A stretch of 34,634 nt of DNA from Octopus bimaculoides. Its lineage: Eukaryota. Under the pieces are notes generated by a model. The model made no database searches, had not been told where the DNA came from, and was given only the letters and a program-made list of their open reading frames with translations. The stretch spans positions 3,642,171 to 3,676,804 of the forward strand of contig NC_068997.1 in the NCBI RefSeq assembly GCF_001194135.2, written 5' to 3'. A program made the position numbers and the translations under genes. This document shows positions 794 to 31,035 of this stretch, piece by piece. Each line of letters starts with the position of its first letter. Within the stretch, counting starts at the first letter, position 1.

Positions 794-1350
794 TTAGAAG
801 CGAGTAGTTTTCCGTGTTTTACGCTTATACTGTAAATGACTTTCACGAATAAGCGACCAAATATAGTCTCCCATCGTGTTTTCGTTATACGATCCATGCT
901 CACGGCTTTCAAAGTCCATTATATCTTGGTGGAATTGCTCGCCTTGCTCCTCCGGGTACGCTCCCACGTTCTCCTTAAATTTATCACGATGAGCATCAAG
1001 GATGTGCACTTTGAGGGACATCTTGCAGCCCATTTTGCCGTACAATTTCTGCAACGTCTCAACAAGTTCTACATAGTTTACGGCTTTGGGATTTCCCAGG
1101 AACCATCGGACCACTGCAACATAGCTGCTCCGCGCTGATTCCTCCGTTTCAGTGAGCTTCTTGGGGAATTTCTTGCACTCTTCTTTATTTGTGGTCCGAC
1201 GAAGACACTGGCTTTCACTTTTACCTCAGACAGCTTAGTCTTTAAGATATCTGAAGGCGGCAGACTCTAGAGCCGAAACATACTGTCTATAATACCCAAT
1301 TTTATGTGCAGTGGAGGAAACATTACTTTCAGGGGGTCCAACCAGATGTA
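794..1350 (-). mobile_element. Decayed DNA transposase C-terminal part, Chapaev3 (CMC)-type
   Basis: Minus strand reads LDPLKVMFPPLHIKLG (frameshifts) ...FVGPQI...FLGN...MSLKVHILDAH..FKENVGAYPEEQGEQFHQDI, motifs I recognise from Chapaev3 transposases. Confidence 0.8.
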
Positions 1351-5090: not shown

Positions 5091-5157
5091 TTAATGTTGG
5101 TTGTCGATGTGGTACTTCCAGAGATTGTGTGGAAGAAAACGGAATTGCTGTATGCAG
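5091..5157 (+). CDS. Exon: Cys module 1 ([23 protein letters not shown])
   Basis: ttgttcttttttcag|TT...TGCAG|gtaaat; 67 nt, phase 1-2; 4 Cys; paralogous to 18630-18693. Confidence 0.85.
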
Positions 5158-6885
5158 GTAAATATAGAATACTATCGTCATTTTTGTTATTGTTTTCATC
5201 ATTCTTTTTCATTTTTATCTACTTTTCTTTCTCTTCTGTCTTTACCATCTTGTTTAACACCAGCTCAACACTAGTAGAACAGATCTCGTGCCAAAGTCTT
5301 TGGCATTACAGACTTATTTTCACTCATAGCTTTTCTCTGACTGCTTTATTTGATGTGTTCTCCCTGTTTCTGTATGCAATTATTTAAACACAAGCCAGCA
5401 CTGAATCAGCAGGATTAGCATTAATGACGTGCTAGTCATGGCCATCTCCCCTTTTCTGACAAATGTATCATTCTCTTTCTCTCTTTCTCTCTTTCTCTCT
5501 CTTTCTCTCTGTCTGGCTATCTATCTATCTATCTATCTATCTCGTTATTTACCTTCGTATCTATCTATCAAAAATATACAATTACATGGATGCATACATA
5601 TATCTGTGTTTATATATGTATATATATATATATNNNNNNNNNNNNNNNNNNNNNNNNNNNNNNNNNNNNNNNNNNNNNNNNNNNNNNNNNNNNNNNNNNN
5701 NNNNNNNNNNNNNNNNNNNNNNNNNNNNNNNNNNNNNNNNNNNNNNNNNNNNNNNNNNNNNNNNNNNNNNNNNNNNNNNNNNNNNNNNNNNNNNNNNNNN
5801 NNNNNNNNNNNNNNNNNNNNNNNNNNNNNNNNNNNNNNNNNNNNNNNNNNNNNNNNNNNNNNNNNNNNNNNNNNNNNNNNNNNNNNNNNNNNNNNNNNNN
5901 NNNNNNNNNNNNNNNNNNNNNNNNNNNNNNNNNNNNNNNNNNNNNNNNNNNNNNNNNNNNNNNNNNNNNNNNNNNNNNNNNNNNNNNNNNNNNNNNNNNN
6001 NNNNNNNNNNNNNNNNNNNNNNNNNNNNNNNNNNNNNNNNNNNNNNNNGTACGGTAAACAAGTAATACTTTAGAAGATATGAGAAATTTTTAAGCAATCC
6101 TTCTCAGAATAATCTTTCAACTGTAAAATGTATACAATATATTAAAGTGGCCCTATATTCCCCTCTTTCTTCTTCTTCTTCTTCTTCTTCTTCTTCTTCT
6201 TCTTCTTCTTCTTCTTCTTCTTCTTCTTCTTCTTCTTCTTCTTCTTCTTCTTCTTCTTCTCTCTCCCTTTTCCCCCCTTTCTTTCTCTCTCATTCGTTAT
6301 GCCTCTCCGTCTACTCTGTTCTTCCAACCACAAATTTCCTCCTTACATTTGACATGAATGTGTGCATTCTGATATATTGATGTGAAATTCAAAATATGCG
6401 TGAAAACAGGAATGTATGAATGAATATAAGCATACTCATTTTTGTATCATACTTAACGTATAATATACACTGTTAAAGACAAGCTACTACGGGTTTCGTT
6501 CAAGATAACAACTCTTCTGAACGTGCTGTGTTTAAAAACACAACATATATCGTATGCGGACGAGTCCATGTCTCAGGTTTTGTGAAAGCATGTTTTCAGG
6601 AGAAGAGTCTACCGTATCTACATCTAGACCGGTGGTATACCTTGGTATACGATCTAGGAACAGCAACCCTAGGCAAAACACACCGATATAATAAGGCTCA
6701 GACTATTTTCTACTATTTTTAGTTCAGCACACCGAGTGACAGTGTAACCTTCATTTCATTAAGGTTATCTCAGCTTGATGATAAGCTACATAAGTATTAC
6801 ATCATCAGGTTCAGCTAGCTAAGAAACGTATGGAGCGTGCATTTTACCTGTTACAATCCCTCAATTTGGACATGTATATAAATAA

Positions 6886-6965
<80 letters not shown>

Positions 6966-7205
6966 TGTGTGTATATATATACATATATATATATATTTGT
7001 GTCTATATATTTGTGTGTATATTTATGTGTGTATGTATATATATGTATATATGTCTGTATATAAATATGTGTATATATGTGTGTGCATATATATATATGC
7101 ATACATGTTTATATACGTATATATATATACATACACAATCATACATAGAAGACAGAAGAGGAAAAGAATACGTGACCGCGAGACAGAGAAAGAAGAGCGA
7201 GAGCT

Positions 7206-7241
<36 letters not shown>

Positions 7242-7522
7242 AGGGAACGACAGCAAGAAAGAGTGATAGTGGGAGATAATAAAGTGGGAAAAGAATGCCT
7301 GCGTACAATAAATGCCAAGTTTCTCGATTGTATATGTTAGCGAAAAAAAAACAGTTTAAAGTTTATGAATATGTAACAATAGGCAAATTAGTGGACAGGC
7401 TATTATCATGAACTGAATGCAATTAAATATGCTCAAACATGCATACATACCTATTTACATACCTACCTACATACGTACAAATAGGCAGACAAGACAGACA
7501 CACACATACATATACACATATG

Positions 7523-7561
<39 letters not shown>

Positions 7562-9772
7562 ATGGATGTATATACACGCGCATGCATACACGCAAAGATT
7601 TATGTGCGTGTATGTGTATGTAGGTTAGTATTTTATATATGTATGTGTATGTGTGTATGTGTCTGTGTCTGCCTATGTTTGTATGTGTGCACGCACATAT
7701 GTATGTATGTGAGTGAAAGGGTCTTTAGTTCAAGACAAGGCAGCTATTGGTGATTGCGACTACTTGAACTGGCTGGCACATGCAAGGATATGCAAGTATT
7801 GGGAGTACGCTTGTGCGTGTGTTTCATTACTGTTTCTGTGCTTGCATATGCTTTCCATACCTGGGACATTAAATGGAAAATCTCTGAAATTTCTTGTTTA
7901 AATTTTCATTATTCGTCTAATCGAATGGGTCTGAAAAATATGTATATGTATTTTCTCTGCAGATATGTTGTTGCGTAACATATTTGCTCCGAAAATAGCT
8001 GGAATAAACGAAAATTTATAGCCTTGATATATGAGTTGTATTTTCATCATCAGATCTCTATTGATGTTCTCTGTTTCCCCGACTTTTGAGGAGTCATTCT
8101 AACCCGCTGGGCAACAGATAGCCACAATGGTGCTCAACACTTGTTCCATGTGCTATACAACTATATCTGGCCAAATGTATTTATTGCGGGTTGCTGTTCT
8201 TACTGAAATATTCGACCAATATTGTTTAATTTAAAAAATGTGGATACTCTTTGGTTCTGGTGTGCCTTTGGTATGGCCGTCAGGACAGTTCTTTCTGCGT
8301 ATGACATTGTCGACTGTCTTGGCAAGTGTTTCATGTGCCATACGAAGTTACTATCTTTTAGGATACTACGGACTGTTACTAATGATAAGAGTGATATCTT
8401 CCATGCTGATATGGCACGTTCGACACTTTCGAAACATTCTCAATTCCTTTCTTGACTAGATATTTGGCAGCTGTCTCCTGTTCATGGATAGCACAGACAT
8501 AGCTTTCTAGGTGAAATGTAATGTACTTCTCACAGGAGAGGCTACAATTCCTGTAGATGCTCTTGTTGCCTCTAGCTCGCAGGTTATGTATTCATGCATC
8601 ACTTTCATCTGGCGTAATGTGTATTTCACTTCTAAGTCTCTAAATAAGTCATTCCAGCCACACTTGGTTCACGTGGACGAAACGTAAGCTTAGAATACTT
8701 GTCCAAGAGTTATTCGTCTAATCTCTACTGTTGAGGATACATGTGATGTAGTCATTTCTCTTTTTACTATTTAGTAGACGTTGTCGAAGTGAAATTATGT
8801 AGCACTCAAAGACATCTGGATTGACGTTATGCCTCAACATCCACCCCTTAGTATAACATAGATCTTCTCAATGGCATTTCTACAGTTACCAGTCACTGTT
8901 ACCATCTTCCCTGTCCTGATGTCCAAGTTGCGAACTTCTTCAAGTGTCCAGTCTAATATCCGAAATATTGGTACTAGTGCTGGCATTGCGGAAGAATATT
9001 GGAATATGGTTTTATAGAATGTAGACAGCCCTGTATCTTCCGATGTCTTCTGGAGTATATTTTCGTAATTCTACCTAATATGTATGTATGCATCTATGTA
9101 TGTATGAATGTTATGTACGCAGCAACAGACAGAGAAACAACAGCCAAGGAGATGGCTTTTAATATTCTGTTGATGTTGGAACATCCATTTTAGTGGTAAC
9201 GCACCGCTATAACCAATATTCTCACATTTCTTGCAAAATCAATCTACCAATATCTTGTAAAGTACCTTTCATACAATAACTTTTAACAGTACCTTGTCAC
9301 ACTCACTTGTAATAATACTGTCTTGTGGCGCTGTCTTGCAGCTTAATCGTGTTACACAGTCTTGAAACGTTATAGCTTGATGTACTGAATCATTATTGTA
9401 ACATTGTCTTGCAACTGTACCTTGTAACAAACATTTTATAACAAATCAATGTAACAAGAATATGTCACAATGACTGGTAATACAGAAAATATGTAAAATA
9501 TACAAAAAGTAACCTTTATGAAAATAAACTTTTATTTTCAGAACAATTGAATCTAATACAACTGAAACAGTTGGTAGCACACATCCAGTCCAAAATGCAA
9601 GCCATGTCGTAGACACTACATCCACTGTCAAGACATCAACTTTGAGAAGTTCCCTGAAAACAAAAACAGATGAAACAGCAATGACAACAGTAAGAACATC
9701 AACAACACCAACAACAGTAACAACAAAAACAACAGCGTCAGACGCTAGAGCAACAAGGATTCCAAGAACAAC

Positions 9773-9848
<76 letters not shown>

Positions 9849-11828
9849 CCATCACCATTGATATCGACGTCGTCGTCATCAATAACAACAACATCGTCTT
9901 CCTCATCATCAGCAACGGATGCAACACGCATATCAAGTCTAGATAGTATGTAGATGTTTTTAAAATATTTTAACCATCATATTCCTATCATTGTATATAT
10001 ATCTAAAAATAAGGTTATATAAATTGTATTAAAAAATATTCGAATTATTTATTTAAGAATAAATAAATTAATATAATAAATATAATAAATACATTAAATA
10101 TAATTATGTAGAAATCGTCTAAATTAAATACGATTAATTATTTTAAAGAATCTTAATGATCCTTGTTTATGATTATTTAAAAACTAGATACAATGTACTG
10201 ATTAAGAAAATTACATTTAAGCAATTCAATTTTCTATACCTAAAATATATATGTTTGATAGAACAAACAGGAAAAATATGACTCAATACAGGAGGGTATA
10301 TACATTTTATTATTTTTAATCGGCAGAAAGTTGTAAATGGCACTCAAGTGCGGGAAGTTTCGTGCTTTGATTTTATAAGTCTATACTTGAAACTTTCAGC
10401 CTTTGAGTCACTTTTGTATCATTCTGCCGATCGGAAATAATTAAAAAAAAGTAAATTAGATATATCTAAATGTTTATAAATTTCAAAAATATTTAAATAT
10501 TTATATATTTCAAAAAATATTTAAATGTTTATAAATTTCAAATATATATAAATGTTTATAAATCTCGATGTTTATAAATTAAAGCAATTTCATTTCCAAT
10601 GTTTTTAAAGTATAGAAAAATTTGTGGAGCAGAGAGTAGCTGACTAGTATTTTATTTTATCGATCTTGAGACAATGAAAGATAAAGTTAATCTCGGTAGG
10701 TTTGGAACGCAGAGACTTGTTACTTTTACTTTGTCTTAGAGTGAACATCAAGTTGCTTAGAGTAGCGTAGAAAAAGGCGTGAGTAGTAAGTTGGATCATT
10801 GGGTTTAACTGACAAACTAGTGACTGACAAATCCACCTCGAGGAAGGCAAGGAAAAGCAACATTTATGTATTCTCATGCAAGTCCTGGGAGTCAGTAACC
10901 AGAGATTTTTCGCCGATCTAAAGCCGCAAAGGCATTCTATCATTTCGAATGTTTTTTTAGAGAATTGTCTGAAGGAAGAGGTTGTATATAAGACTGATGA
11001 GATCGATGTGGTTTATGCTTAATCTGAACATCTATAAATTAATGTCTGCATCAGAGACGTGGGCACTTAGAGAATACCATAGGGTTGACGTTCTAGTGAA
11101 AAGAAGTTGCGTACAGTTGTTAAAGAAGGTACACGAAGGTGAGGCTGGGTAGGGATGACAACAGAAGAGATATGTGTACCATGTAGATTTGGATTAAGGC
11201 GATACGAAACTAAATAATTAAGGTGAAGTGTTTTGTATGAAACACAGCATGGCTGAATGCCGGAAAGTTTTGCGAAGGTGTTTTTACCAGATATTTCGAC
11301 GCCCCCAATTTAGGATGTTTCAAGAAATATAGCATACTTATAATTAGACTTACTTCCTGTAGAAATTTAAAACCATCTTTAAGAGATGGATGAGAAAATA
11401 TCATTCAGCCTTATTTTCTTTCTAGGTAGAGTTTTCATTCTTTATAACTGTTATATCATCGGCTCTTCAACTGAACTTAACCTCATTTCGGGAACTTAGC
11501 GGAAAATTTGTTAAATCTTTTGTACTGTCATTATGTCCAGTGGTAAATTACACTCCCCTTCTGTTGACTTCCCCTTCCTAACTTAGTTCCAAAATGTGAA
11601 AACATTATCTTTCATTAACATTTTGAATAAAGTTTTATAGTCAAATTTTCATCAAAATGTATTTCTTATGCTTTATTTTATATCCAATCAGATAAGTCTA
11701 TCTCGGTGACAATCAGCTTTCAAGATATTATCCCGAAGTTGCTTCAAAAGGTAGTAAGTTCTTCCGTTTCTAAACTAAATTCTTTTCTTGGTATTCAAAA
11801 TTTAAAAAGAAAAACGTTCTTTTAATGA

Positions 11829-11900
<72 letters not shown>

Positions 11901-12454
11901 ATGCATGTGTGTGTGTCTGTGTTTGCGTTTGTGTACACACACATACAATATGTGTGTTTATGTGTATAAAGTATGTATATACGATTATTACATCGTATAT
12001 ATGAAACGCACGTGATATAAATAGACGCAAACACACATATATATGATATTAGATTTATATGTATATTTATATGCGAGTGTGTGTATACTTATATACATAG
12101 GCACATCTATCCATCCATCAATAGCTACATACATGCAGACATACACACATACATACATACATACATACATACATACATACATACATAAATACATACATAC
12201 ATACATATATGCACACATGCTTGCATAGATATATATAGTCCATCCTATTTCAAGTAATAGCGTGATATTTACTGTCTGAGAGAAGTCAATGAACGCTACG
12301 CATGATTAAGCTTGTGTGTTGCAGACAAGAAAAAAAAGTGTAGTATTTTGTTTTGAAAGACAGTCTCCCAAATATAGAATGTTATGCAACAGAAGAATGG
12401 GCAGAATACGTATGCATACTTATTACCCTAGTTATATATGTTTCTAGTTCAGAG

Positions 12455-12487
<33 letters not shown>

Positions 12488-12551
12488 GTGTGTTTGTGTG
12501 CATGTATGTGTCTCTGCGAGTGTGTGTATGTCTGTGTGTGTGTGTTTGTGG

Positions 12552-12597
<46 letters not shown>

Positions 12598-13455
12598 NNN
12601 NNNNNNNNNNNNNNNNNNNNNNNNNNNNNNNNNNNNNNNNNNNNNNNNNNNNNNNNNNNNNNNNNNNNNNNNNNNNNNNNNNNNNNNNNNNNNNNNNNNN
12701 NNNNNNNNNNNNNNNNNNNNNNNNNNNNNNNNNNNNNNNNNNNNNNNNNNNNNNNNNNNNNNNNNNNNNNNNNNNNNNNNNNNNNNNNNNNNNNNNNNNN
12801 NNNNNNNNNNNNNNNNNNNNNNNNNNNNNNNNNNNNNNNNNNNNNNNNNNNNNNNNNNNTATATATACATATATATATATGCATGTCTATATATATAATA
12901 ATGATGACAGTATTAGGGATGAAAATCCAAATTTACAGGGAAAAATTCAATTTAATTTAAATTATCAAAATTAAAATTAAATTAAATTTCACAATATATA
13001 ATATATAAATATATAATTTAGAGAGAAAAAAAACAGAATTATTGAATTCATCCATGAAAATCCACAATCACATGTAGAAAAATTTGATAAGTAAATACAC
13101 TAAAAAGACCTATAATAAAAATCAAAACAGTACAAAGTAATAAATATTATTTTATTTTAACATATATTATTTTATTATCTTAATATTTATTATTTCGACT
13201 TTTTTGATTTTTATTATAGGTCTTTTTAGTGTCTTTACTTATTAAATTTTTCTATAGGCGCTTCATTCAGTATATGTGTGTGTACATACACAGTCAAAGA
13301 TCGGTTGTATGTCTAAGGCTCTCATTACAACTAAGAGGGAGAACCAAACAATATGTTGTGTAATGGTATCGTTTGTAGGGAAACTTTGTGTGAATCATTT
13401 ATTGAAATGTGTTACAGATCCCTAGCTGCCTATTCATATATGCGTCTGTAAATCC

Positions 13456-13486
<31 letters not shown>

Positions 13487-15846
13487 TGTATATTTTGGTA
13501 AAGACACAAATCGAACAGGGGAAATAATACAGTTGGACAACATGAGAGCTTACAAGATGTAGACAAAAAAATGCGAAAATCCACGGACAAAATATAAACC
13601 CTGAAAAATACGTTAAACATAAAATGTTTTACATAGTGAATAGTACCCCGAAATAGTACCGACGTGTCAGATGAACACTTCGTTAAAGCAAAATAAATAA
13701 TAAGGAGAAAGAAACAAGGAAAGAAATTTTAGATTACATGTTTATCGTTCGAATGCATGCTGCAAAATATTTTCACATATACATATTCTTTTTCAGTATA
13801 CTTTTGATTTCAAAGAATTTTTTATAATTTTTTACAGCTTGACCAATTCTACAAAAGTCAGAATCTGCCAGGCTATGTTGATGTACAATTAGAAAATATA
13901 TCGTGAGTTAATTTTTTAAAATAATTATCTTGGCGTAGCCCTATCCCAGCACTCATCCAGGAAACATATCTATAATCCAGGCATATATATGTAATATTTC
14001 AATGAGCAATTATTTGATCCTAGCAGCCGTTAATCTGCCGTATGCGTGTATGTTTTATAGAGCATAAAATAATCTATAATTTTCGTATTTTATTAATGCT
14101 ATAAATGCACACAATTACACGTACGCACACGCAAGCAAACACACAGATACACATCCGTGAGCGCGTGACAGAACATCCTTCAACAGAAAACATTTATTTA
14201 CACGTCACAGACTTTCTTTTTATTTAGTTATAGGTTGGCGGATGGATTCTAGTCCTTGTTTTTCTGAACGTTTGATTGCATCACATTAAATATTTTGTGA
14301 TATTCAATGAAAATACTCGTAGTTGTGTTAAACATACCCAGCAATATGTCCAAGTAATTTTCTTTGAGACACCAACATATTTTTTATCTGATAAAATCAA
14401 ATGAATGTATTGTCAGTTTTAAATATGTTACTGACATTCTAAGCTTAACTCTTCGTTATACTTCTCGTACTAACTATGTATTTTGGAGATAATCATAATT
14501 GGTTAATGGCTATCAAGCAGCAGAATAGAAGAGATACAGAAATCTATGTTGCACGTATTGCCTGGACCATTTGAAAGCTTGAGCCTACTGGGCAATTGGC
14601 CGTGGAGTGGGGCCGCATTTAAGGACCCAATTCAAATTTGTGTTTAGTGTAGTTATGTTATAGAAGCCTCAGAGCATTTCTCTGCTTGGGAAGCTATAGT
14701 AATGTTGAAGTGAGCCTGCCTACTGCTGAGGCTTTATTCTATTATATTACTAAAAGAAGAATCTCCAGATATCTTGACCGTGTCCTTGCCCTCCTAGTGG
14801 CTTCCCTCCTCTCTCACATCCAAGACACCAACCATGCGCTTCGTTTGTTCAACTCTTTCTCCTTCCTTCCTGGCCCCTCTAAACTTCTCTTCACTCTCGA
14901 CATCCAGAACCTTTACACGGTGATCCCTCACCACGAGGGGATGAGTGAACTCCAGTATTTCCTTGACTTTCGAACCAACCCCCAACCCGACACATCCACA
15001 CTCGTTCGTCTGGCCGAACTTACCTTCTCACTCAACTGCTTCCCGTTCGCTGGTGATTTTTACCAGAATCTCGGAAGTAGCCATGGGAACTAGAATGGGC
15101 CCCAATTATGCGAGCTTGTTCGTTGGCTACGTTCAAGCCCAAATATTCTCTGAACCCGGAACCATGTGACTAGGAAATAAACGTCTTACCATACAGACAC
15201 ACCTGCGTTTGTATGCGTTTTGTATTAATTTATGAAGAATGTTCTTCCTTCTTTAACATCGTACAGTTTTGTTTCAGAGGGAGTTTTAGAAGGATTTCTA
15301 GCAGGTCAAGCTACCGTACATAGCTTTCTCTGTTGTGATCAGGTTTCAGTAAATGCTCAAAATTGTCAAGTTGAAGCCTCTACACAGTCGTTCGGCAGGC
15401 TAGAAATAACAGCCTAATCTCCTTCAGATCATTCTCTACAGTCTTACATAAGATACCACATATTAGATAATGTGGTAAAGTAGATCTAAAAACTACAAAA
15501 GAGTCGGGATGTTCATATTGTTGGAATACTTTTGATCGTAAGTTTGCTCGATCAGGTTTCACCGAGGCTACCCAAGAACAGCTCTGTTAGAAACAAATAT
15601 GGAAGCCTCCACATGATCACTAGTCCTGCTCAATCTGCTTAAACATTGTAACGGAATCTCCCTCAAATTCCACACACTGTCATTGTATATATAACAGCTA
15701 CAAAAACAAAAACAGCCATGAAGTATAATTTATACAACAATTATTACCTGATACACCTTTCTTGTTACATACAGACACATACACACACAAACAAAAATTC
15801 AAACACACATACTCACACACAAACCTTTTCTCCCCTTCCTTCTTCA

Positions 15847-15877
<31 letters not shown>

Positions 15878-17621
15878 GTCTCTCTCAAACACTCACGCAC
15901 AAGCACGTATAATAAATTTTAATTTTGATTTTTGCAGGAAACATGCCAACGATATAACAGTGAAACACCGCGTTAACTTCGATCGTTTTGTTGATGAAGA
16001 CACTTTACGAAGGATAAGTCAAGTTCTTTTCCAAGCTTATCGCAACGAATCTCTCACAGGAATTGTGTGGAAAATGATCAGTATACCGCATATTCATTAC
16101 AAAAATATCACTTGTAAGCAATACCTCAGTGTTCAAAATTTTCATTCTGTGATTCCTATATTCTTCTGCACTTTTATTCACTTACTGCGTGCGCCCATGT
16201 TGTCAATTGTATATCGAATCTAGCCCCTTTTTCTGTATATGTATGTATTTATAGTATATATATATATATATATATGTATGTATATATATATATANNNNNN
16301 NNNNNNNNNNNNNNNNNNNNNNNNNNNNNNNNNNNNNNNNNNNNNNNNNNNNNNNNNNNNNNNNNNNNNNNNNNNNNNNNNNNNNNNNNNNNNNNNNNNN
16401 NNNNNNNNNNNNNNNNNNNNNNNNNNNNNNNNNNNNNNNNNNNNNNNNNNNNNNNNNNNNNNNNNNNNNNNNNNNNNNNNNNNNNNNNNNNNNNNNNNNN
16501 NNNNNNNNNNNNNNNNNNNNNNNNNNNNNNNNNNNNNNNNNNNNNNNNNNNNNNNNNNNNNNNNNNNNNNNNNNNNNNNNNNNNNNNNNNNNNNNNNNNN
16601 NNNNNNNNNNNNNNNNNNNNNNNNNNNNNNNNNNNNNNNNNNNNNNNNNNNNNNNNNNNNNNNNNNNNNNNNNNNNNNNNNNNNNNNNNNNNNNNNNNNN
16701 NNNNNNNNNNNNNNNNNNNNNNNNNNNNNNNNNNNNNNNNNNNNNNNNNNNNNNNNNNNNNNNNNNNNNNNNNNNNNNNNNNNNNNNNNNNNNNNNNNNN
16801 NNNNNNNNNNNNNNNNNNNNNNNNNNNNNNNNNNNNNNNNNNNNNNNNNNNNNNNNNNNNNNNNNNNNNNNNNNNNNNNNNNNNNNNNNNNNNNNNNNNN
16901 NNNNNNNNNNNNNNNNNNNNNNNNNNNNNNNNNNNNNNNNNNNNNNNNNNNNNNNNNNNNNNNNNNNNNNATATTCATTACAAAAATATCACTTGTAAGC
17001 AATACCTCAGTGTTCAAAATTTTCATTCTGTGATTCCTATATTCTTCTGCACTTTTATTCACTTACTGCGTGCGCCCATGTTGTCAATTGTATATCGAAT
17101 CTAGCCCCTTTTTCTGTATATGTATGTATTTATAGTATATATATATATATATATATGTAGACATGTGTGTGCGTGTGCGTTTGTATGTATGTATGTGTGT
17201 TTGTATGTGTGTGTCTGTGAGTGTGTCTGTGAGTGTGCGCGCGAGATGGTGCGAATGTAGATCTGCGCACACATGCAGATTCGTGTGAGTACATACACGC
17301 AGATATAAAGGCATATAGATACACACATATATACATAAATACTTGTACATCTACCGGCCCTTCCTACTTGCCCCCAACCACGCGACCGATGTCTTGGACG
17401 ATTTCGTGTCCACCATGTGGTATTTTTCCTGCAATTGCTGTCGCTGCAATATCATAATCAAACTGCGACACCACATGACCTTTCTTGACCAATCGCTGGC
17501 TAACATCTAGTAGCAAACATTAACTTTCTTCCATCGAACTTTCATTCAAACTCAATGGCCAACGACTAGCGATACGCTTGAAACACAGAGTACCAAGAAG
17601 TTTAAATCAAACTGTTTTGAT

Positions 17622-17657
<36 letters not shown>

Positions 17658-18333
17658 CAAAAAAGGAAAAAGACAAAAAAACAACAACAAAAAACAACAA
17701 CGTGAGGACGTGATACAGATTGTGTTACTAGACGCTCGGGAAAGGAAAGAGAGAGAATATGACGTTTCGAGCGGAGCTCTTCTTCGGAAACAAGGAAAGT
17801 CCACAGAAGGGGAAAACGGAGGAAGAAAAAATCGCCAGCAATGTCCGACCGACCATATTATCAGATGTTGTTACGCATCATTGATCACAATGCATTTTTG
17901 CATTGTCTTAGCCTTCAAATGACGCCACTCAACTAGTTAGGCGAGCAGGTCAACATTCCCCGCTGACCGAAACAGGGAGCAACGTGTAATGAAGTGTTTT
18001 GCTGACGAGCAAAACACGCCACCCAATCAGTAAATCGAACCCACCATCTAGGGATCGTGAGTGCAAGTGCCTAACCATTAGGTATATACTTTTTATTAAA
18101 CCTGAAATAATTTCACAGACTGTTACTCAGAGTTTCACATTAGCCTTCGTCGGACATTTGTGAACATACGTATGATCATACAACTCTCCGGCGAACGGTA
18201 TTGTGAAACTCTGAGTAACAGTTTGTTACGCATATTACTCTGTCTACAGCCTTCGAGTACATTTTTCCACCTTGCTTCGCACTTATGTGCTTCCTTGCGT
18301 ATGTATGTATGTGTATATATATACATATATATC

Positions 18334-18370
<37 letters not shown>

Positions 18371-18371
18371 T

Positions 18372-18413
<42 letters not shown>

Positions 18414-21124
18414 CATGCATTTATATACGTATGCATGTATGTATAATTGTATGTATAGTTGTATTTATGTGAATTTAAACTTCTCCCTAATTCCAACAAT
18501 TTTATATTGTACATGAGCCATATGCCTCTATGTAGCTATCAAAATTATTTGTTCTTAATATCCAAACGCTCACCGTATTCAATTTGATGAATATTAAATC
18601 ACTTTATTTTTTATTTAAATTCATATCAGCCGTTGTCTTTTGTTTCTGTGGAAGCTACACTTGTATACAAATAAAAGATGGATTCCTATGCAGGTTTGTG
18701 AAAAATATATACATACTTATATAGCTACATACATACATACATACACACATACATACATACATGCATACATACATACATGCATGCATGCATACATGCATAC
18801 ATGCATACATACATATACACACACGCATATGTACTTATGTATATAGGAGGGATGCTGAAAAGTTCCTGGCTTTAAGGGAGTCACGAAAGGCCTGGCTGGA
18901 GGCCCAAACTTCAGATTTATCTTACAGGGCTCAGAAAAACTGAGGACCGATGCAATAAGTATGTGAATCTCGGAATGGAATATGTTGAATAAAATCATAA
19001 TTAACTGATCCTCCTGTATTTTCTTTTACCTCAAGCTATGAACTTTTCAGCACCTTTTCGTAAAGATACATACAGACATTTCACTTCCGAGACAAATAGG
19101 ACACAGAGATATATTATAACACCAGACTTGAGACGAGTGGCGTTGCACCCGCAAAACGGGAGAATGAGTTCGGGAATGCAACAGAGTATTACCCGATAGC
19201 CATACTGTAAAACAAAGTAAGGGTTTTACTCTATCTATCACAGACTCTAAATGTAGCTCTGACGTATGCCATATCGTTTGAGTCTATTCAATCTTCACTC
19301 ACAGCACTTGAGACTGCGTAGATATCACTTGTACAAGATGCAGTGTATTCAGATTGAACTTGAAATCATGTTGTTACGAGTTGAATGTCTTAAGCACACC
19401 GCCACACTTACATCCATTTTATTCCAAACAGAAACTCAATATCCTCTCAGATGTCATATATGAAGTTAACATTGTCGTTGTATCTCTATGTCAGCAGACG
19501 TTACATCCACTTGTGAAACTGGCATTTAAAGATTGAGACATTTAGCTACATAAGTAATATGTAATACGTGAGTTAGAGATGAAAAATAACAGAATTAATC
19601 ATTGAATACGGAAAGAAAACAATATTACTCAACGGCTGGTAATATTTTAATCACTTCAGAAAGTGCAGGAGACAAAGCACAACATGTTTTAGTTTTGTTA
19701 TGACCTCATTAGCCAAAGCTACACTTTGTCTCTACTTGTCTAAGTAGCAATGAGAGAAGCATTTCCATGTCGAGCAGTTAAGCAGTTTGAGTAGGTTTTT
19801 TTTCTTCCAGATGGACACAAAAGTATGTGTCTTTGTACAACAACTAGCATTCCGTCGGTTACGACGATGAGAGTTCCAGTTGATCCGATCAACGTAACAG
19901 CATGTACATGTGGCTGAACACTCCACAGACACGTGCATCCTTAACGTAATTCTCAGGGGGATTCAGCGTGGCACAGAATGTGACAGGGCTGGCCCTCTGA
20001 AATACAGAAACTACTCATTTTTACCAGACGAGTGGACTGGAGCACCGTAAAATAAAGTGTCTTGATCACGGGCACAACGCTCCGCCGGGAATCGAGCTCA
20101 TGATCGTAGGATCGCGAACCGAATACCCTAACCACTAAGCCACGCCCCCTCACTGTATTTTTATAACACCCGATAGACGTCATTGTTCTCGACACAAAAC
20201 TTTCCGCAGTTGAAAACTTGCTATCGGGTAAGACCACGCATATTTCAATGATATTGTGTATCCGATAGTTAGCTCTTTCCGTTTTTTCCTTCACTCTGTA
20301 GATTTGGGTTCCACATCCAAATAATTTATAATTTGGTACGTTTGATGAGAAATAACTCATTTAAACTGACGGTGGCGAGTGCCATGTATATCGTTACCGT
20401 ATAAGTAAATACACAAGTCCTTGCGTTGCTTCGGGATTAACTTTGCCTGTAATTTCCCCGGATCGATAAAATAAAGCACCAGTCCAGGTCTGAGGTGAAT
20501 GATATCAATTAATCCCCTCTCTCAACCTAGCTGGCGTTGTACCTATATTAGAAACCATTATTAATTATAACACGTTCTTCTTTGTAGGAATACAACCGAA
20601 AACGTCCCCAGCGGCTCCAGTAAGTGAAATAAATATATTCTTATTCATTCTATGATTAGCCTCAGACTAAATATGTTCATTACCTTTGAAGGAATTCCAA
20701 ATAAGGCACACTTTTAATAGTTCGAATAATTACCCAACTTTGAAATTTGCATAAATTCTTCCTTTGGTCGGTCAATATAAAAATATTTTACGAATAAGCG
20801 CAAATTCAACGGGAACTTAACCTGACACGCAAGAAAAAAATTACCAGCATAACTCATTGGAGTAAAACCCATAAAACATATAGAAACTAGTTTTATACTG
20901 AGTCGATTTCTTCCGACTACAACCAAGAGCAGGCACGATGCTGTGTCTGCAAGTATTTCCGAAATCCGTTGAAATCCGATTCGTTATATTTCAGATACTG
21001 TGACAGTAGTGCTGTCGGTGTTGTTATCATTGGCCACAGTAATAGCAATCGTTCTGGGAGGACTCTGGTATTATCGAAGACATTATTCATATCGAAACAA
21101 TTATCAAAGAACTGACCTAGACAC
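5091..21124 (+). CDS. Partial multi-exon gene (8 exons, 997 nt): mucin-like type I transmembrane glycoprotein with a divergent SEA-like domain and two 4-Cys modules
   Basis: Exons 5091-5157, 9542-9945, 11692-11750, 13838-13902, 15938-16113, 18630-18693, 20588-20619 and 20995-21124 all have AG/GT boundaries. Phases chain 1-2, 2-1, 1-0, 0-2, 2-1, 1-2, 2-1, 1-2 with no stop. The protein gives a coherent mucin/SEA-like/Cys/TM order with 7 N-glycosylation sequons. Confidence 0.85.
6167..6260. repeat. (TTC)n microsatellite, ~30 units
   Basis: Direct reading. Confidence 0.95.
8040..9255 (-). mobile_element. Decayed R4/Dong-like (RLE) LINE, RT C-terminus to zinc-knuckle region
   Basis: Minus-strand fragments [22 protein letters not shown] and [19 protein letters not shown] match the fragments at 28276-29350; many stops. 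Confidence 0.65.
9542..9945 (+). CDS. Exon: Ser/Thr-rich mucin stalk ([10 protein letters not shown]...TTS25PSP...SSLD)
   Basis: tttattttcag|A ACA ATT ... GAT A|gtatgt; 404 nt, phase 2-1; open S/T-rich frame, overlapping track ORF 9642..9953. Confidence 0.85.
9774..9848 (+). repeat. (TCA)25 microsatellite inside the mucin exon (poly-Ser)
   Basis: 75 nt of uninterrupted TCA in frame. Confidence 0.95.
10468..10575. repeat. AT-rich minisatellite (~25-28 bp, aaatgtttataaatttcaaaaatattt)
   Basis: About 4 imperfect tandem copies. Confidence 0.7.
10880..11210 (+). mobile_element. Decayed RTE-type LINE RT fragment
   Basis: [16 protein letters not shown]...LYKT...[10 protein letters not shown] resembles the RTE RI.KA..AF / LY.SETW motifs. 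Confidence 0.5.
11692..11750 (+). CDS. Exon: SEA-like domain part 1 ([20 protein letters not shown])
   Basis: tttattttatatccaatcag|AT...AAG|gtagtaagt; 59 nt, phase 1-0; it is the best candidate found that bridges the flanking phases. Confidence 0.7.
13075..13254. repeat. Inverted repeat / hairpin
   Basis: 13075-13127 matches the RC of 13202-13254 at 51/53; an inner taataaatatta pair extends the stem. Confidence 0.9.
13838..13902 (+). CDS. Exon: SEA-like domain part 2 ([22 protein letters not shown])
   Basis: ttttttacag|CTT...ATA TC|gtgagt; 65 nt, phase 0-2; L..FY and GY.xVxV pattern typical of SEA helix/strand. Confidence 0.8.
14755..15165 (+). mobile_element. Penelope-like element reverse transcriptase fragment (frameshifted)
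   Basis: ISRYLD..L...[10 protein letters not shown]...[16 protein letters not shown]...[12 protein letters not shown] / [18 protein letters not shown], characteristic Penelope RT motifs; frameshift near 15070. Confidence 0.88.
15938..16113 (+). CDS. Exon: SEA-like domain part 3 ([58 protein letters not shown])
   Basis: ttttgatttttgcag|G AAA...ACT T|gtaagc; 176 nt, phase 2-1; beta strand (ITVKHRVNF) followed by an amphipathic helix. Confidence 0.85.
16971..17159 (+). other. Exact 189-bp duplicate of 16090-16278 across an N-gap (probable assembly overlap)
   Basis: Identical sequence on both sides of gap 16295-16970, ending in a TA repeat. Confidence 0.8.
17370..17580 (+). mobile_element. Possible Penelope N-terminal ORF remnant
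   Basis: [15 protein letters not shown] resembles the PLE N-terminal H..FL..C motif; a PLE-terminus-like gacgtttcgagcggagctcttc lies nearby at ~17760. Confidence 0.35.
17918..18082 (-). mobile_element. tRNA-derived SINE 5' part
   Basis: The RC contains a tRNA-like head (A box ctaatggttagg, B box ggttcgatt); homologous to 19955-20153 and 22207-22528. Confidence 0.7.
18116..18225. repeat. 110-nt hairpin (MITE-like or pre-miRNA-like)
   Basis: cagactgttactcagagtttcaca matches the RC of tgtgaaactctgagtaacagtttg at 23/24, with imperfect pairing continuing inward. Confidence 0.85.
18630..18693 (+). CDS. Exon: Cys module 2 ([22 protein letters not shown])
   Basis: tttaaattcatatcag|CC...TGCAG|gtttgt; 64 nt, phase 1-2; same CxCG..C..CR pattern and phases as 5091-5157. 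Confidence 0.85.
18844..19062. mobile_element. Mariner-derived MITE (~215 bp)
   Basis: TIRs gatgctgaaaagttcctggctt / aagctatgaacttttcagcacc, flanked by TA; the interior encodes the mariner C-terminal remnant [18 protein letters not shown]. Confidence 0.75.
19955..20153 (-). mobile_element. tRNA-derived SINE
   Basis: RC: gtggcttagtggttagggtattcgg...gagctcgattccc...gtgcccgtgatcaagacactttatttt; tRNA A/B boxes. Confidence 0.8.
20365..20556 (+). mobile_element. Degenerate SINE
   Basis: ggtggcgag head, gatcgataaaataaagcaccag core and gtacctatattagaaacc tail, as at 33616-33806. Confidence 0.6.
20588..20619 (+). CDS. Exon: juxtamembrane linker ([10 protein letters not shown])
   Basis: ttcttctttgtag|G AAT...TCC A|gtaagt; 32 nt, phase 2-1. 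Confidence 0.8.
20995..21124 (+). CDS. Exon: transmembrane helix and start of cytoplasmic tail ([43 protein letters not shown])
   Basis: gttatatttcag|AT ACT...GAC AC|gtaagt; 130 nt, phase 1-2; about 23 hydrophobic residues followed by an aromatic/RR stop-transfer. Confidence 0.9.
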
Positions 21125-21465
21125 GTAAGTTCAATCTATCTTCTACTTTATTCCTTCTAACTTTAGTTTCAGATCTGCTAGATTACAATAAACCTAGTTT
21201 CAAACGATAACGATAACAAAATTATTTACCTATTTGAAGCCTGTTGAACTTCACGTCTCTATACCAATTACTAAAAGTGGTATGGCCTGCTCTTTTGCAT
21301 AGCACCAGATAAATGTTTACTAATGTGGTGGACTGGCAAAGCTGTCAGAGACTCACAAAATGTGTAGGGGTATTTATTTTGGCTGTATGAGCTCAAATGC
21401 CATCGATGTCAGGTTCGATCTTCCTTCGTCCGGGGTCAATAAAAATGTACCAGTTTTTATTTCCC

Positions 21466-22206: not shown

Positions 22207-22528
22207 AGACCCCTTTGGTCATGAATGACCATGGGATTGCGCTTAGAAAGTTACCCTCCGAGGCACAAGTCCGAGCAAGGTTATTTATGGAAGGCCAGCA
22301 GTCACCCATGCATACCAGCCTCCCCTCTCCACACCACTGATGTTATCCAATGGAAAGGCAAAGGGGTCGATACAACTTGGCACCAGTGACGTCGCAACTC
22401 ATTTCTACAGCTGAGTAAACTGTAGTAACGTGAAATAAAGTGTCTTGCTCAAGAATACAACACGCAGCCCGGTCCGGGAATCGAACTCGCAACCTCACGA
22501 TCGTAACCACTGAGCCATGCGCCTTCAC
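22207..22528 (-). mobile_element. Near full-length tRNA-derived SINE
   Basis: The RC begins gtgaaggcgcatggctcagtggtta...gagttcgattcccgg and ends in gaccaaagggg plus a (ctcac)n tail. Confidence 0.85.
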
Positions 22529-26746: not shown

Positions 26747-28181
26747 CGGTGAGTTATTTATAACATTTTGGCATTTACTTTGACCCTTTCATTTCGGTAT
26801 TTCTGTTGAAACACACAGATTTTGTCGTAATTAATTCTGAAAATATAGAAGAATATATTACAAGAGCTATATGAATATTAGGCGGGTGGTTGAAAAAAAA
26901 AAGTTAAAAGGCAATGTTGATGAATAGTTTTAGCTTAGGGAACGTCACATAAGAAGTTAGCATTACGGAGTTAGGCTGGATTAGTATCAAAAGGGCAAAA
27001 AGAAGTTGAAGTGTGAAGAGAAAATTGCTCTGGTGGTTAATTTCATGTGTGTGTATATATATATATATATATTTCGTTTTGGGATTTGGTTTGCAAGGTT
27101 TTTTAATGTGATTTCGTGTGTTGAAGCATATTCTGTTGTGTCTGGGGAGAGTCATTTTCTTTTCGTGCCTTAAAATTTAACACACTCACCGTTAAAATTT
27201 CCACTTATTTTTATTTTCCTAAAATTTTCGTTCCGTCTTGCAATCTTTTCAATNNNNNNNNNNNNNNNNNNNNNNNNNNNNNNNNNNNNNNNNNNNNNNN
27301 NNNNNNNNNNNNNNNNNNNNNNNNNNNNNNNNNNNNNNNNNNNNNNNNNNNNNNNNNNNNNNNNNNNNNNNNNNNNNNNNNNNNNNNNNNNNNNNNNNNN
27401 NNNNNNNNNNNNNNNNNNNNNNNNNNNNNNNNNNNNNNNNNNNNNNNNNNNNNNNNNNNNNNNNNNNNNNNNNNNNNNNNNNNNNNNNNNNNNNNNNNNN
27501 NNNNNNNNNNNNNNNNNNNNNNNNNNNNNNNNNNNNNNNNNNNNNNNNNNNNNNNNNTATATATTTACGACTCTACTTATTTCTGTGTCTCTGTACCTTT
27601 TTCCCCCTCTCGTTCTTCCTTCTGTCACTACTATATCTCTCTCTTCCTCTCTTTCTCTCGTTGCTCACCTATTTTCTACTTCCACCCCTTTTTTCTCCCT
27701 CTACCACCCTTTCTCCTTACCCCTCGCTGGTCACATGTGTCCAGCTACTTATTATTTTCTTCCTTAGCTATCGACAAGCAAACATAGTACTACTTCGTCC
27801 CGTTTCTTTCCAGTTCGTTGTTTCACAGCATTCAATATACACATAATTTTTCACGTCTGGCCGTATAGCCTTTTCCGTTTGTTTTCCTGTCTTGTTTTCT
27901 GTCCGCCACTACATTCCTGCATGGTACAAATTTAATCTGTGGTCCGTGGGAAGAGCCACTTTAACGAAGCCTCCTGCCCTAACTCTTTGAAACGCCTGTG
28001 TTAGAATGGTTTGCAACGTCCTGTACCCAGATATGCACCTATATATGCAGGTAGATGTAGGTATGTACATAGTTGTACGTATATATGCATATACTCATTT
28101 ATTATTTGTTATATATATATATATATACATATATACATATATATTTGTTTATATTTATATATATGTAGATATGTATGTATA

Positions 28182-28283
28182 TGTGGCTGTGTGGTAGGTA
28201 GCTTGCTTACCAAGCACATGGTTTCGGCCGGTTCATGCCCGCTGCGTGGCACCTTGGGCAAATATCTTCTACTACAGCCTCTG
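28182..28283 (+). mobile_element. SINE 5' half, truncated at the inverted LINE
   Basis: tgtggctgtgtggtaggtagcttgctt...ggttcatgcccgctgcgtggcaccttgggcaaatatcttctactacagcctc. Confidence 0.8.
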
Positions 28284-28940
28284 CCGACTTGTTTACATTT
28301 TAGGTAGAGGAGGTCTATATCATTGTTTATGTGAAAACTATGCGTGCTTGTTTGTATTTTTCGGGTTTTCTCATCAATGGCTCGGATCTCATCAATGGCT
28401 CGGATCTCATCAATGGCTCGGATCTCATCAAGCGTCCAATCAAGCAACTTAAATGTTGTTATGAGTACTGGCACTGCAAACACACTGTGGCGCGCTGTTT
28501 CATTGAATACAGAGAGTTCTGAGGTCCAAATTTTCTTTATTCGGCTGTAATATTCTTTAGTGACACATCTTTTGTTACAGGTGCCACTGTAAGATATGTT
28601 TTTATCCACCCCTAGATACATGTTACATTTCTCATCAGATACAGGAGAAATAGCTAAATCATTGACGGAGATGCTATTAGTCTTGTTTATAGTTTCCCAC
28701 CTTTTCACAACCATATAACATTTATCCTGACAAAACTCCAAACCAGCATCCTGTAAGAATGTTGTAACTATGTCAAGGCTCTTTTTCATCTCATGCATAT
28801 TCTTTGCATAAAGTTTTTAAGTTATCCACAAAGAAACAGTGTTTAATTTTGGTATTTCTGTTTCCTTGTGATCCAGTGCGATACCCTTCAGACTTCCTTA
28901 ACATGAATGACAAGGGGTTTACAGAAAGTATAAACATCTT
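28276..28940 (-). mobile_element. R4/Dong-like LINE RT segment (inverted part)
   Basis: MFILSVNPLSFMLRK..GY...HCFFVDNLK (YMDD equivalent)...YLG...KEYYSRIKKIWTSELS...FAVPVL...LDWT...DIDLLYL...GRG. Confidence 0.85.
28370..28431. repeat. 18-bp tandem triplication (ctcatcaatggctcggat)x3.4
   Basis: Three exact copies plus a partial; encodes DEIRAI x3 in the LINE frame. Confidence 0.95.
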
Positions 28941-29350
28941 AACCCTTCGGCAGCATCTTTTAACCACCAAGCGTCGAAGTGCATCCCTTGACTACGTTTG
29001 CATACATGAAACTGATGACATCGTAAGACATGGAAGACAGCTCCTTGAGTAACACTCCTTGTCTGATAACGTAGAATACATTCCCAAAGAAGCTGCACGA
29101 CTCTACCGCAACATATCATCGCATGAAAGGATGAGACTATATGAGCAGAGGACTATGCATGGAAATGTTAGTAGAGAGCTCCTTGATGATAGTAACATCG
29201 ATCATCAAAGCAGTTCATCATGGCCAAATAGCCGGATTATTACCTCTCACTTTGAAGGGTATGCGTTTGCAATCCAAGAGGAGGATATATCAACCAAGTA
29301 CCTGATGCACACAAAAAATAGAGACTCAGGAAAAGCTGCAAAATGTGACA
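28941..29350 (+). mobile_element. R4/Dong-like LINE segment downstream of RT (sense part)
   Basis: TLRQHL...MHGNVSRELLD...SSSWPNS..ITSHFEGYAFAIQEEDISTKYL...KCDN, stopping just before the CCHC knuckle. Confidence 0.8.
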
Positions 29351-29732
29351 ATTTCGAATTTTCGGCTTGCGTTTTCGGCTGATAAAGTTGAGTAGACCGA
29401 AATTTTGAAGTCACTGTCAACTTGTTCCTCGTAAAACTTCAATAAACAATTACTCTACTAAAATGTATTGAGCAATCCTTCAGTTTAAGCTTGACATAAA
29501 AACAAACATCAATATATATCAATGTGTGAGTGTGTGTGTATATGTTTATATGTATGTGTATATATATATATATATGTGTGTGTTTTGCAAACAATTGAAC
29601 ATGCAAGTGCTACCAGTCGAAAGCTCCACATACCGGAAACCAGTAAGTGTATGAGGTTATCAGGGGAAAATGAGCGCCGTCTCGGGGCCTACCTCTCGAC
29701 GGCATCATTGCGTACCGGCCCGCGAAATTTTG

Positions 29733-30325: not shown

Positions 30326-31035
30326 GTGTGTATCGTGAAGTATGTCTTCATCGTATCTTTGCAATACATTTGACTTTGAAGATTGAGTCACCCTATCAAT
30401 AAATGTTGCATTGTACGTTTTAAATATCATTAATTTAACATTTACACACGCTCTCGCAAACAAACAGAGAAACACTCACACAATCACACACACACACACA
30501 TTGACACAAGCTCGGAAACACTTTATTGCAACCTTTGATTTATTTCTTTAACAACAGGAGCTGTGCAGTTTCGGTTGCAAGTAACGACACATCCATCTCC
30601 AAGAGTACCTGTTCAAGTAACTATAGTAATAAACACCTGCCCCTGAAGTACAAACGGAACTGGCAGAAAATCAATAACGACAGCATCAGACGTGTCAGCC
30701 AAGAAATCTTCTCTTCCGAAGGCGATTATATTTTTATTCCACGCAAACCAAGTAAGATATTAAAATCATTCTTCTTCCTGTACCTTTTTTTTTACTGATG
30801 TGTATTTTTCTGGGCTTTCTTCGTCTTCATTTTACCATTCTTTTCGTAATTCTATGGTACAATGCGACCACGTGGTTTCGTTTACTTTTTCATAAACACA
30901 CACTTTACAGGAAGTACAGAATTAATGTGGATGTAGTAAGCAATCATGTATATGTATATGAGCATGTGTGTGTGCGTGCGCGTGTGTGTCTGCGTGCGTG
31001 TGTCTATACACTCATGCCTACATATGTGTGCATAT

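Follow-up and report, generated by a model that had tools for sequence, protein, structure and literature searches.

A candidate membrane mucin-like gene with a divergent SEA-like domain, unannotated in the genome of Octopus bimaculoides

Background

The arrangement in which a mucin region, a cysteine module, a SEA domain, a second cysteine module and a transmembrane (TM) segment follow one another in a single protein is known mainly from the vertebrate mucins MUC3, MUC12, MUC13 and MUC17. The skin, sucker and gut surfaces of cephalopods depend on mucus and on the glycocalyx, and to our knowledge the cell-surface mucins of these animals are essentially uncharacterised. The present work concerns a stretch of the Octopus bimaculoides genome on contig NC_068997.1 (the window: 34,634 bp, 36% G+C, interrupted by seven N-gaps) in which eight exons on the plus strand join into a single reading frame. 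We interpret these exons as probably belonging to a real, unannotated gene, 5'-partial and restricted to its lineage, for a membrane mucin-like protein whose SEA-like domain is divergent and non-cleaving, and we assign to this interpretation a probability of roughly 0.6, which covers, as one of its parts, the proposition that positions 5091-21128 carry the 3' two-thirds or more of a protein-coding gene. The gene model is predicted from the DNA sequence.

Several described proteins provide points of reference. The 63-kDa sea urchin sperm flagellar membrane protein, which supplied the founding "S" of SEA, is an invertebrate single-pass protein that contains a serine/threonine (S/T)-rich region, a SEA domain, EGF-type modules with the true six cysteines, and a TM segment. 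In the CD34, podocalyxin and endoglycan sialomucins, Pei and Grishin are said to have recognised, in 2017, a divergent SEA-like domain; the CD34/podocalyxin family is defined by a conserved cytoplasmic tail of ~70 amino acids (aa) ending in the PDZ ligand DTEL or DTHL. CD164 (endolyn, MGC-24), a sialomucin of small size, carries its Cys-rich module between S/T-rich regions; a TM segment follows, and the very short tail ends in the lysosomal YHTL signal. It has no SEA-like domain.

SEA folds show low sequence conservation (PMC6586460), and they are classically located close to the membrane and adjoining an S/T region that is O-glycosylated (Lang 2006, PMC1552070; Hayward 2019, PMC6586460). SEA-like domains in the juxtamembrane position often contain protease sites for shedding (PMC6586460). 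MUC13 is laid out as a Pro/Thr/Ser-rich (PTS) region, an EGF module, a SEA domain and a TM segment (PMC1552070). MUC1 is without a structured neighbour domain, whatever the size (PMC6586460), and its SEA domain autocleaves at GSVVV (PMC9564314).

Structure of the gene model

The exons listed in Table 1 join into 1001 nt in one frame, which encode 332 aa and end in TAA. All of the acceptors are YAG triplets behind a T-rich tract and all of the donors are GT; when the donors are ranked among the GT sites of the window, six of the seven fall within the top ~10% (range ~85th-99th percentile), the donor of E1 being the best (4.6) and that of E2 the weakest of the set (-1.0, ~85th percentile). The micro-exon E7 restores the frame between E6 and E8, and its G+C content of 56% lies at the 99th percentile of the pseudo-exons, by which we mean the 14,212 open AG..GT segments of 55-184 nt that are found in the window. 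Every peptide quoted in the first-pass annotation of this DNA, which had proposed an eight-exon model with AG/GT sites, compatible phases and ~332 aa, was located on the plus strand. The layout that it described likewise stands: a Cys module, an S/T-rich stalk, a compact alpha/beta domain, another Cys module, a single TM segment, and a short basic, tyrosine-containing tail. Its seven N-X-S/T sequons were all recovered, and NKS is indeed created by the E2/E3 junction; NIS, which it had also taken to be made by a junction, is not: the intron opens with a G, and the codon therefore reads TCG in either case.

Table 1. Positions of the features of the gene model in the window (a slash marks a boundary between exon and intron)
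Feature	Position	Strand	Description
E1	5091-5157	+	4-Cys module 1; acceptor ttttttcag/TT, donor CAG/GTAAAT; first 2 nt belong to a split codon
E2	9542-9945	+	S/T-rich mucin-like stalk, 134 aa, two sequons; donor ATA/GTATGT
E3	11692-11750	+	start of SEA-like domain: strand b1 (SISVTISF) and first half of helix a1
E4	13838-13902	+	rest of helix a1 and strand b2; acceptor tttttacag/C, donor ATC/GTGAGT
E5	15938-16113	+	strand b3, helix a2 and strand b4; 58 aa; sequons NES and NIT
E6	18630-18693	+	4-Cys module 2; phases in 1, out 2
E7	20588-20619	+	32-nt micro-exon with sequon; acceptor ttctttgtag/G, donor CCA/GTAAGT, score 3.4
E8	20995-21128	+	TM segment, cytoplasmic tail, stop TAA 21126-21128
AATAAA, possible poly(A) signal	21187-21192	+	59 nt past the stop

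At the 5' end, E1 is the most weakly attached exon, being separated from E2 by 4.4 kb and one gap. It shares its intron phases (in 1, out 2) and very nearly its length with E6; the similarity between the two exons was considered as proof of an internal duplication and rejected, since their Smith-Waterman (SW) score of 32, although the best non-self match for E1, is not an outlier. At the 3' end, the stop codon overlaps a consensus donor, AC/GTAAGT, at the boundary of 21124 and 21125 (score 4.0), and it is with this donor that the end coordinate of the first-pass annotation, 21124, coincides. An isoform with a longer cytoplasmic tail may be produced by use of this donor; no candidate exon was found to which splicing could proceed onward from it, and the AATAAA at 21187 favours termination at the TAA. 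The hexamer is itself weak evidence, because in DNA as AT-rich as this a copy turns up by chance roughly every kb.

Three of the assembly gaps (5634-6048, 12598-12859 and 16295-16970) are situated in introns 1, 3 and 5 respectively, and therefore neither the exons nor the reading frame are interrupted by a gap, but the gaps may contain further unread exons. The gap in intron 5 is flanked by an exact 189-bp duplication (16090-16278 = 16971-17159), by which the final 24 nt of E5, together with the donor of that exon, recur at 16971-17000; the protein is unaffected. Both copies of the duplication continue into the same (TA)n, and for this reason the gap is probably an artefact of two overlapping contigs rather than a true interval; the duplication of the exon end may be one reason why gene predictors miss the locus. 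Nearly all of the seven gaps in the window adjoin runs of (TA)n or (TG)n. Di- and trinucleotide runs with a minimum length of 12-15 nt make up ~5% of the bases that were read. As a consequence of these abundant short repeats, the six-frame translations are full of peptides such as CVCV, YIYI and LSLS which mimic Cys-rich or hydrophobic sequence.

Stalk, cysteine modules and membrane anchor

The stalk consists of 60% Ser plus Thr and 3.7% Pro. The repeats (ACA)n, (TCA)25 and (TCG)n account for approximately half of the DNA of E2, and the protein itself shows no tandem repeat unit. The repeat DNA includes a perfect (TCA)25 at 9774-9848, encoding 25 Ser, with imperfect (ACA)n and (TCG)n on its flanks. 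Because half of the exon is a trinucleotide repeat, its open frame is by itself weak evidence for coding. The (TCA)25 run preserves the frame and is prone to slippage, and is therefore a likely source of length polymorphism, so that the length of the stalk is probably polymorphic.

All eight cysteines of the model are contained in two modules of 18 residues each, with four cysteines per module in the pattern C-x-C-x4/5-C-x8-C. When comparable chains of pseudo-exons, whose Cys content is 5%, are examined, a remainder that is free of Cys outside the repeat-rich E2 is found in only 0.27% of them (P 0.003). The modules match no EGF or other Pfam family at E up to 10. The TM segment has a mean Kyte-Doolittle value of 2.5 over 21 aa, is built from V, L, A, S, G and I, and is followed by YYRRHY; the sequons and the cysteines are all N-terminal to it. 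The tail of 20 aa that is predicted to be cytoplasmic is rich in Arg and Tyr and ends in DLDT.

Similarity to the SEA domain

The first-pass annotation had named a single family in advance, out of the 24,736 in Pfam, as a possible relative of the compact domain, namely SEA. When a 100-aa construct of the domain (NKSISV...KNIT) was compared with Pfam, SEA (PF01390) was matched with 13.5 bits (E 0.08), and the alignment was colinear over 70 residues, extending from protein positions 10 to 79 and from positions 26 to 99 of the 106 in the profile. Other choices of the domain borders gave 13.2 and 13.7 bits, so that the match was obtained with three of four constructs (94-107 aa; E 0.07-0.10), all three of which contain the spliced product of E3, E4 and E5. 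No SEA match was obtained in Pfam with constructs of 144, 180 or 332 aa, with E5 alone or with E3+E4 alone, and none of 15 shuffles matched SEA.

The same match was recovered with an independent SEA hidden Markov model (HMM), which was built from seven PDB-verified sequences (MUC1 2ACM; TMPRSS11D 8VIS and 2E7V; TMPRSS11A 9P1C; MUC16 7SA9, 8VM1 and 1IVZ) and used with filters off. This model scored E3-E5 at 6.7 bits in the same register as Pfam, which comprises a1, b2, the turn and b3. Of 5000 three-exon pseudo-chains from the window, 0.10% scored as high (P 0.001), as did 0.56% of 5000 shuffles (P 0.006). The complete and correctly ordered E3+E4+E5 product scores highest, and the score is lowered by the loss or the reordering of exons: it falls from 6.7 to 3.7 bits when E4, which is included in the Pfam match, is skipped, and E3 also contributes to it. 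The similarity to SEA that is observed is weak but specific, and although it lies below the threshold it is colinear and exceeds what chance produces. To this extent the earlier suggestion of a SEA-like domain is borne out, and it falls short in that the gathering score of 26.4 bits was missed.

The predicted secondary structure elements of a SEA domain were also examined by hydrophobic-moment analysis as a test of amphipathicity. An amphipathic period was detected in b1 (P 0.03), in a1 (P 0.012), where the period is kept across the E3/E4 junction, in b3 (P 0.02) and in a2 (P 0.014); b2 was not significant (P 0.25), and b4 is uniformly hydrophobic; five of the six elements were scored as having the appropriate period. 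No autoproteolysis motif of the G/SVVV type (G/S-[VI]-V-V) is present in the aligned b2-b3 turn, which excludes the self-cleaving subgroup represented by MUC1, MUC3, MUC12, MUC13 and MUC17, and does not exclude SEA as such. From these results we infer that the ~95-aa domain is probably a very divergent, non-autoproteolytic relative of SEA. It is predicted to have the beta-alpha-beta-beta-alpha-beta order of a ferredoxin-like sandwich, for which the amphipathic periods of b1, a1, b3 and a2 are indirect support.

Other comparisons of the domain were negative or uninformative. A phmmer search of the domain against PDB, including the SEA chains, gave no match. An AlphaFold model of E5 alone, which is a single exon of the domain, was all-helical with a predicted local distance difference test score (pLDDT) of 58 and is uninformative. 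A match to DUF5367 (E 0.04 over 33 residues), with a score equal to that of SEA, was regarded as noise, since shuffled sequences score just as high against random families.

Weighing of the interpretation

The results that weigh against the proposed gene are considered here together with the rival explanations, which were scored separately from it, with figures that overlap. One result of this kind is the lack of relatives. When the C-terminal 180 aa and the N-terminal 99 aa were searched against 5.8 billion clusters, neither part had a homologue or an annotated counterpart, and an exhaustive phmmer search with the E5 peptide against 1.84 billion representatives returned only a spurious tandem-repeat protein (P0001). 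These searches were empty although the protein database holds Octopus bimaculoides proteins, in agreement with the first-pass annotation, which had recognised no orthologue. As a control, a repeat-derived open reading frame (ORF) of the window matched "uncharacterized protein LOC106878562 [Octopus bimaculoides]", which lies on chromosome CM046628.1 of GCA_001194135.2. Since the database contains the proteins of that assembly and none of them matches, the gene is unannotated there. Two ORFs of the window had no record when looked up as exact proteins, and a literature search found no paper on an octopus SEA mucin.

The lack of annotation and of homologues is also what would be expected if there were no gene at all, and if the exons were a chance AG..GT chain in AT-rich and microsatellite-rich non-coding DNA whose protein features had been selected by eye. 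Some frame-compatible chain always exists where 34.6 kb of DNA holds 14,212 open pseudo-exons, and the proposed exons are not outliers among these, from which they are indistinguishable in amino acid composition and in GC. Half of E2 is a trinucleotide repeat. TM-like hydrophobic runs are common in the DNA of the window, whose six-frame translation contains 65 hydrophobic 21-mers, and the TM segment was accordingly rejected as evidence for a gene. The global amphipathicity score was not significant when compared with pseudo-exons, and 4 of the 15 shuffles matched some random Pfam family at a level similar to that of the SEA match, which is the level of noise. A chance chain does not readily account, however, for a Pfam match to the one family that had been named beforehand, nor for the requirement of that match for all three exons in the right order, the empirical P of 0.001 for the SEA HMM against pseudo-exon chains, or the distribution of the cysteines (P 0.003). 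The codon positions moreover show an asymmetry of the coding type (G1 27% > G2 19% > G3 14%; chi-square 16.5 versus a null of 8.7 +/- 4.6, P 0.06), and the TM segment has the V/L/A/S/G/I composition given above instead of the F, I and Y of AT-rich noise, and is succeeded by RR, a stop and AATAAA. On balance we regard a chance chain as unlikely.

Two further explanations accept the exons and dispute what they encode. The exons may be real while the 332-aa product is never made, either because the locus is a pseudogene, a duplicate that is decaying or silent, or because the true gene is larger or is spliced differently. E1 starts in the middle of a codon, and the window was found to hold no exon further upstream with a start codon and signal peptide; the model is therefore 5'-incomplete, and this, like the weak support for the attachment of E1, counts against the proposed gene as it stands. 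An inactive or differently built locus would also be in keeping with the overlap between the stop and a consensus donor, with the three unread gaps in introns, with the possible relic copy at 30511-30751 that is described below, and with the absence of annotation; many O. bimaculoides tissues have already been sequenced. The eight exons nevertheless all have open frames of compatible phase, free of frameshifts, and their splice sites are intact; the gaps and the duplicated exon end suffice to explain why annotation missed them, so that we consider this explanation distinctly unlikely. Alternatively, the gene may be real and its ~95-aa domain unrelated to SEA, being some other or novel small alpha/beta fold whose secondary structure pattern resembles SEA by coincidence, an alternative that overlaps with the interpretation preferred here. 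The Pfam score of 13.5 bits is about half of the gathering score of 26.4, the match omits strand b1 and profile positions 1-25, DUF5367 scores equally well, and the GSVVV motif is absent. An hhalign comparison with the seven SEA sequences yielded a probability of only 1.5%, and aligned helix a2 of the domain to helix a1 of SEA; as a control, three true SEA families gave 88%, 92% and 2.6%, so that hhalign also missed one true family in three. Two independently built SEA HMMs agree in one colinear register, the position of the domain between an S/T region and the membrane is the classic SEA context (PMC1552070; PMC6586460), and the SEA fold is known to be poorly conserved in sequence (PMC6586460). 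An unrelated fold is in our judgement improbable, and the reading of the domain as a divergent SEA relative is retained in what follows.

Other features of the window

A contiguous ORF on the plus strand at 30511-30751, which reads LGNTLLQPLIYFF...INNDSIRRVSQEIF...IPRKP, is situated 9.4 kb downstream and resembles the spliced E3-E5 product in a colinear manner. Its SW score against E3-E5 is 55, which was reached by 0 of 150 shuffles (Gumbel P ~0.008), and it ends at a phase-1 donor, CCAA/GTAAGA, which is the same phase as that of E5. The ORF may represent a tandem paralogue that has decayed, or else a fused exon. By itself it gives no SEA signal, its AlphaFold (AF2) model has a pLDDT of 55 and is uninformative, and a Foldseek search with that model found nothing with E below 7. 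A second Cys module or a stalk that could belong with it was looked for and not found, and the window holds no matching Cys or TM exons downstream of it.

Long non-repetitive ORFs without a Pfam match are present at 28109-28798 (minus strand), 28804-29052 (plus) and 29059-29382 (plus), and the interval 28109-29382 includes a small in-frame tandem repeat in which DEIRAI occurs three times. Positions 28936-29351 share 84% DNA identity over 416 bp with the O. bimaculoides LOC106878562 locus, a similarity which presumably reflects a transposable-element family. Two other ORFs, at 14686-15169 (plus strand, in intron 4) and 794-1114 (minus strand), appear by eye to be transposon-derived, with motifs like those of reverse transcriptase or of the C-terminus of a transposase. 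Pfam comparison of ten other long ORFs gave no significant family match; a match of 794-1114 to NDC10_II (E 0.019) is below the cutoff of that family and was rejected as noise-level. An interspersed repeat of 65 nt with 74% identity between its copies occurs at 20025-20089, in intron 6, and at 22408-22472, downstream of the gene, and the copies sit inside the minus-strand ORFs 19953-20360 and 22343-22528. Rfam and tRNA scans of the window found no RNA genes.

Proposed product and significance

The expression, topology, glycosylation, fold and function of the predicted product are what we infer from the features described above. If the gene is as proposed, its product would be a type I single-pass membrane glycoprotein in which, on the N-terminal side, a small 4-Cys knot would precede a densely O-glycosylated Ser/Thr-rich stalk of 134 aa, whose length could vary by slippage of (TCA)25. 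Beyond the stalk there would follow the SEA-like domain of ~95 aa, the second 4-Cys knot, a short N-glycosylated linker, the TM helix and the 20-aa tail. The SEA-like domain and the two disulfide knots would together form a rigid juxtamembrane module by which the stalk is held off the membrane. Given the absence of the G/SVVV site, the protein would remain a single chain unless shed by a protease. It might then function as a membrane-tethered mucin or sialomucin in the glycocalyx, where it could contribute a barrier, a lubricant, or an anti-adhesive or adhesive layer; roles in the skin, mucus or sucker glycocalyx in particular are pure conjecture.

A more specific proposal can be advanced only tentatively, and we hold it to be rather doubtful: that the locus represents an octopod-restricted, never-annotated mucin family in which an extremely divergent non-cleaving SEA fold is bracketed by an undescribed 4-Cys module on its own phase 1-2 exons, and of which the ORF 9.4 kb downstream is a decayed tandem copy. 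If this were so, the mucin-Cys-SEA-Cys-TM layout would have been assembled independently or would have diverged very deeply.

Should the gene be real, a membrane-tethered SEA-like mucin would be added to the cephalopods, and the stalk-Cys-SEA-Cys-TM layout would not be confined to vertebrate mucins of the MUC3/12/13/17 type. It would also exemplify a gene that is missed by annotation pipelines and homology searches alike, the likely causes being the small exons, the exon that is part microsatellite, the gaps, the duplicated exon end and the lack of detectable relatives. Should it not be real, the locus would serve as a caution that in AT-rich and repeat-rich genomes AG/GT segments which fit in frame and finish in a "transmembrane" stretch can be chained together almost anywhere.

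Comparison with known systems

The predicted protein shares different parts of its layout with each of the described systems. Like CD164, it has the layout of a small sialomucin, with a Cys-rich module, an S/T-rich region, a TM segment and a very short tail, but it lacks the YHTL signal and leaves the Pfam family MGC-24 unmatched. As in CD34, podocalyxin and endoglycan, a mucin domain is followed by a globular domain that contains cysteines, by a juxtamembrane stalk and by a TM segment, and the gene has ~8 exons, whereas the tail of the octopus protein is 20 aa long and ends in DLDT, and there is no sequence similarity. The 63-kDa sea urchin protein displays the same combination of an S/T-rich region, a SEA domain, a Cys-rich part and a TM segment in an invertebrate, and differs by its 6-Cys EGF modules; no similarity to it surfaced in general searches.

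In MUC1, as in the octopus protein, the mucin stalk leads straight into a juxtamembrane SEA or SEA-like domain, beyond which lie a TM segment and a short tail containing Tyr. MUC1 has no Cys modules, however, and in the independent HMM alignment the octopus protein has SKHANDITV at the position where MUC1 is cleaved.

The closest layout is that of MUC3, MUC12, MUC13 and MUC17 (PTS - EGF - SEA - EGF - TM - tail; PMC1552070). The octopus protein differs from these mucins in several respects: there is no detectable sequence homology, its SEA similarity is sub-threshold and lacks the G/SVVV site, and no SEA orthology or phylogenetic grouping with known mucin SEA domains was obtained, no homologue having been found. 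Its Cys modules have four cysteines in place of the six of EGF and match no EGF model, and one of them lies before the stalk and not after it; its S/T region is short (134 aa) and Pro-poor (3.7%), and has no tandem repeats save for the poly-Ser microsatellite. What it shares with them is the overall plan, in which an S/T-rich region is combined with small Cys modules that flank a juxtamembrane SEA or SEA-like domain of ~100 aa, with a single TM segment and a short tail, and with an ectodomain that is encoded by multiple exons.

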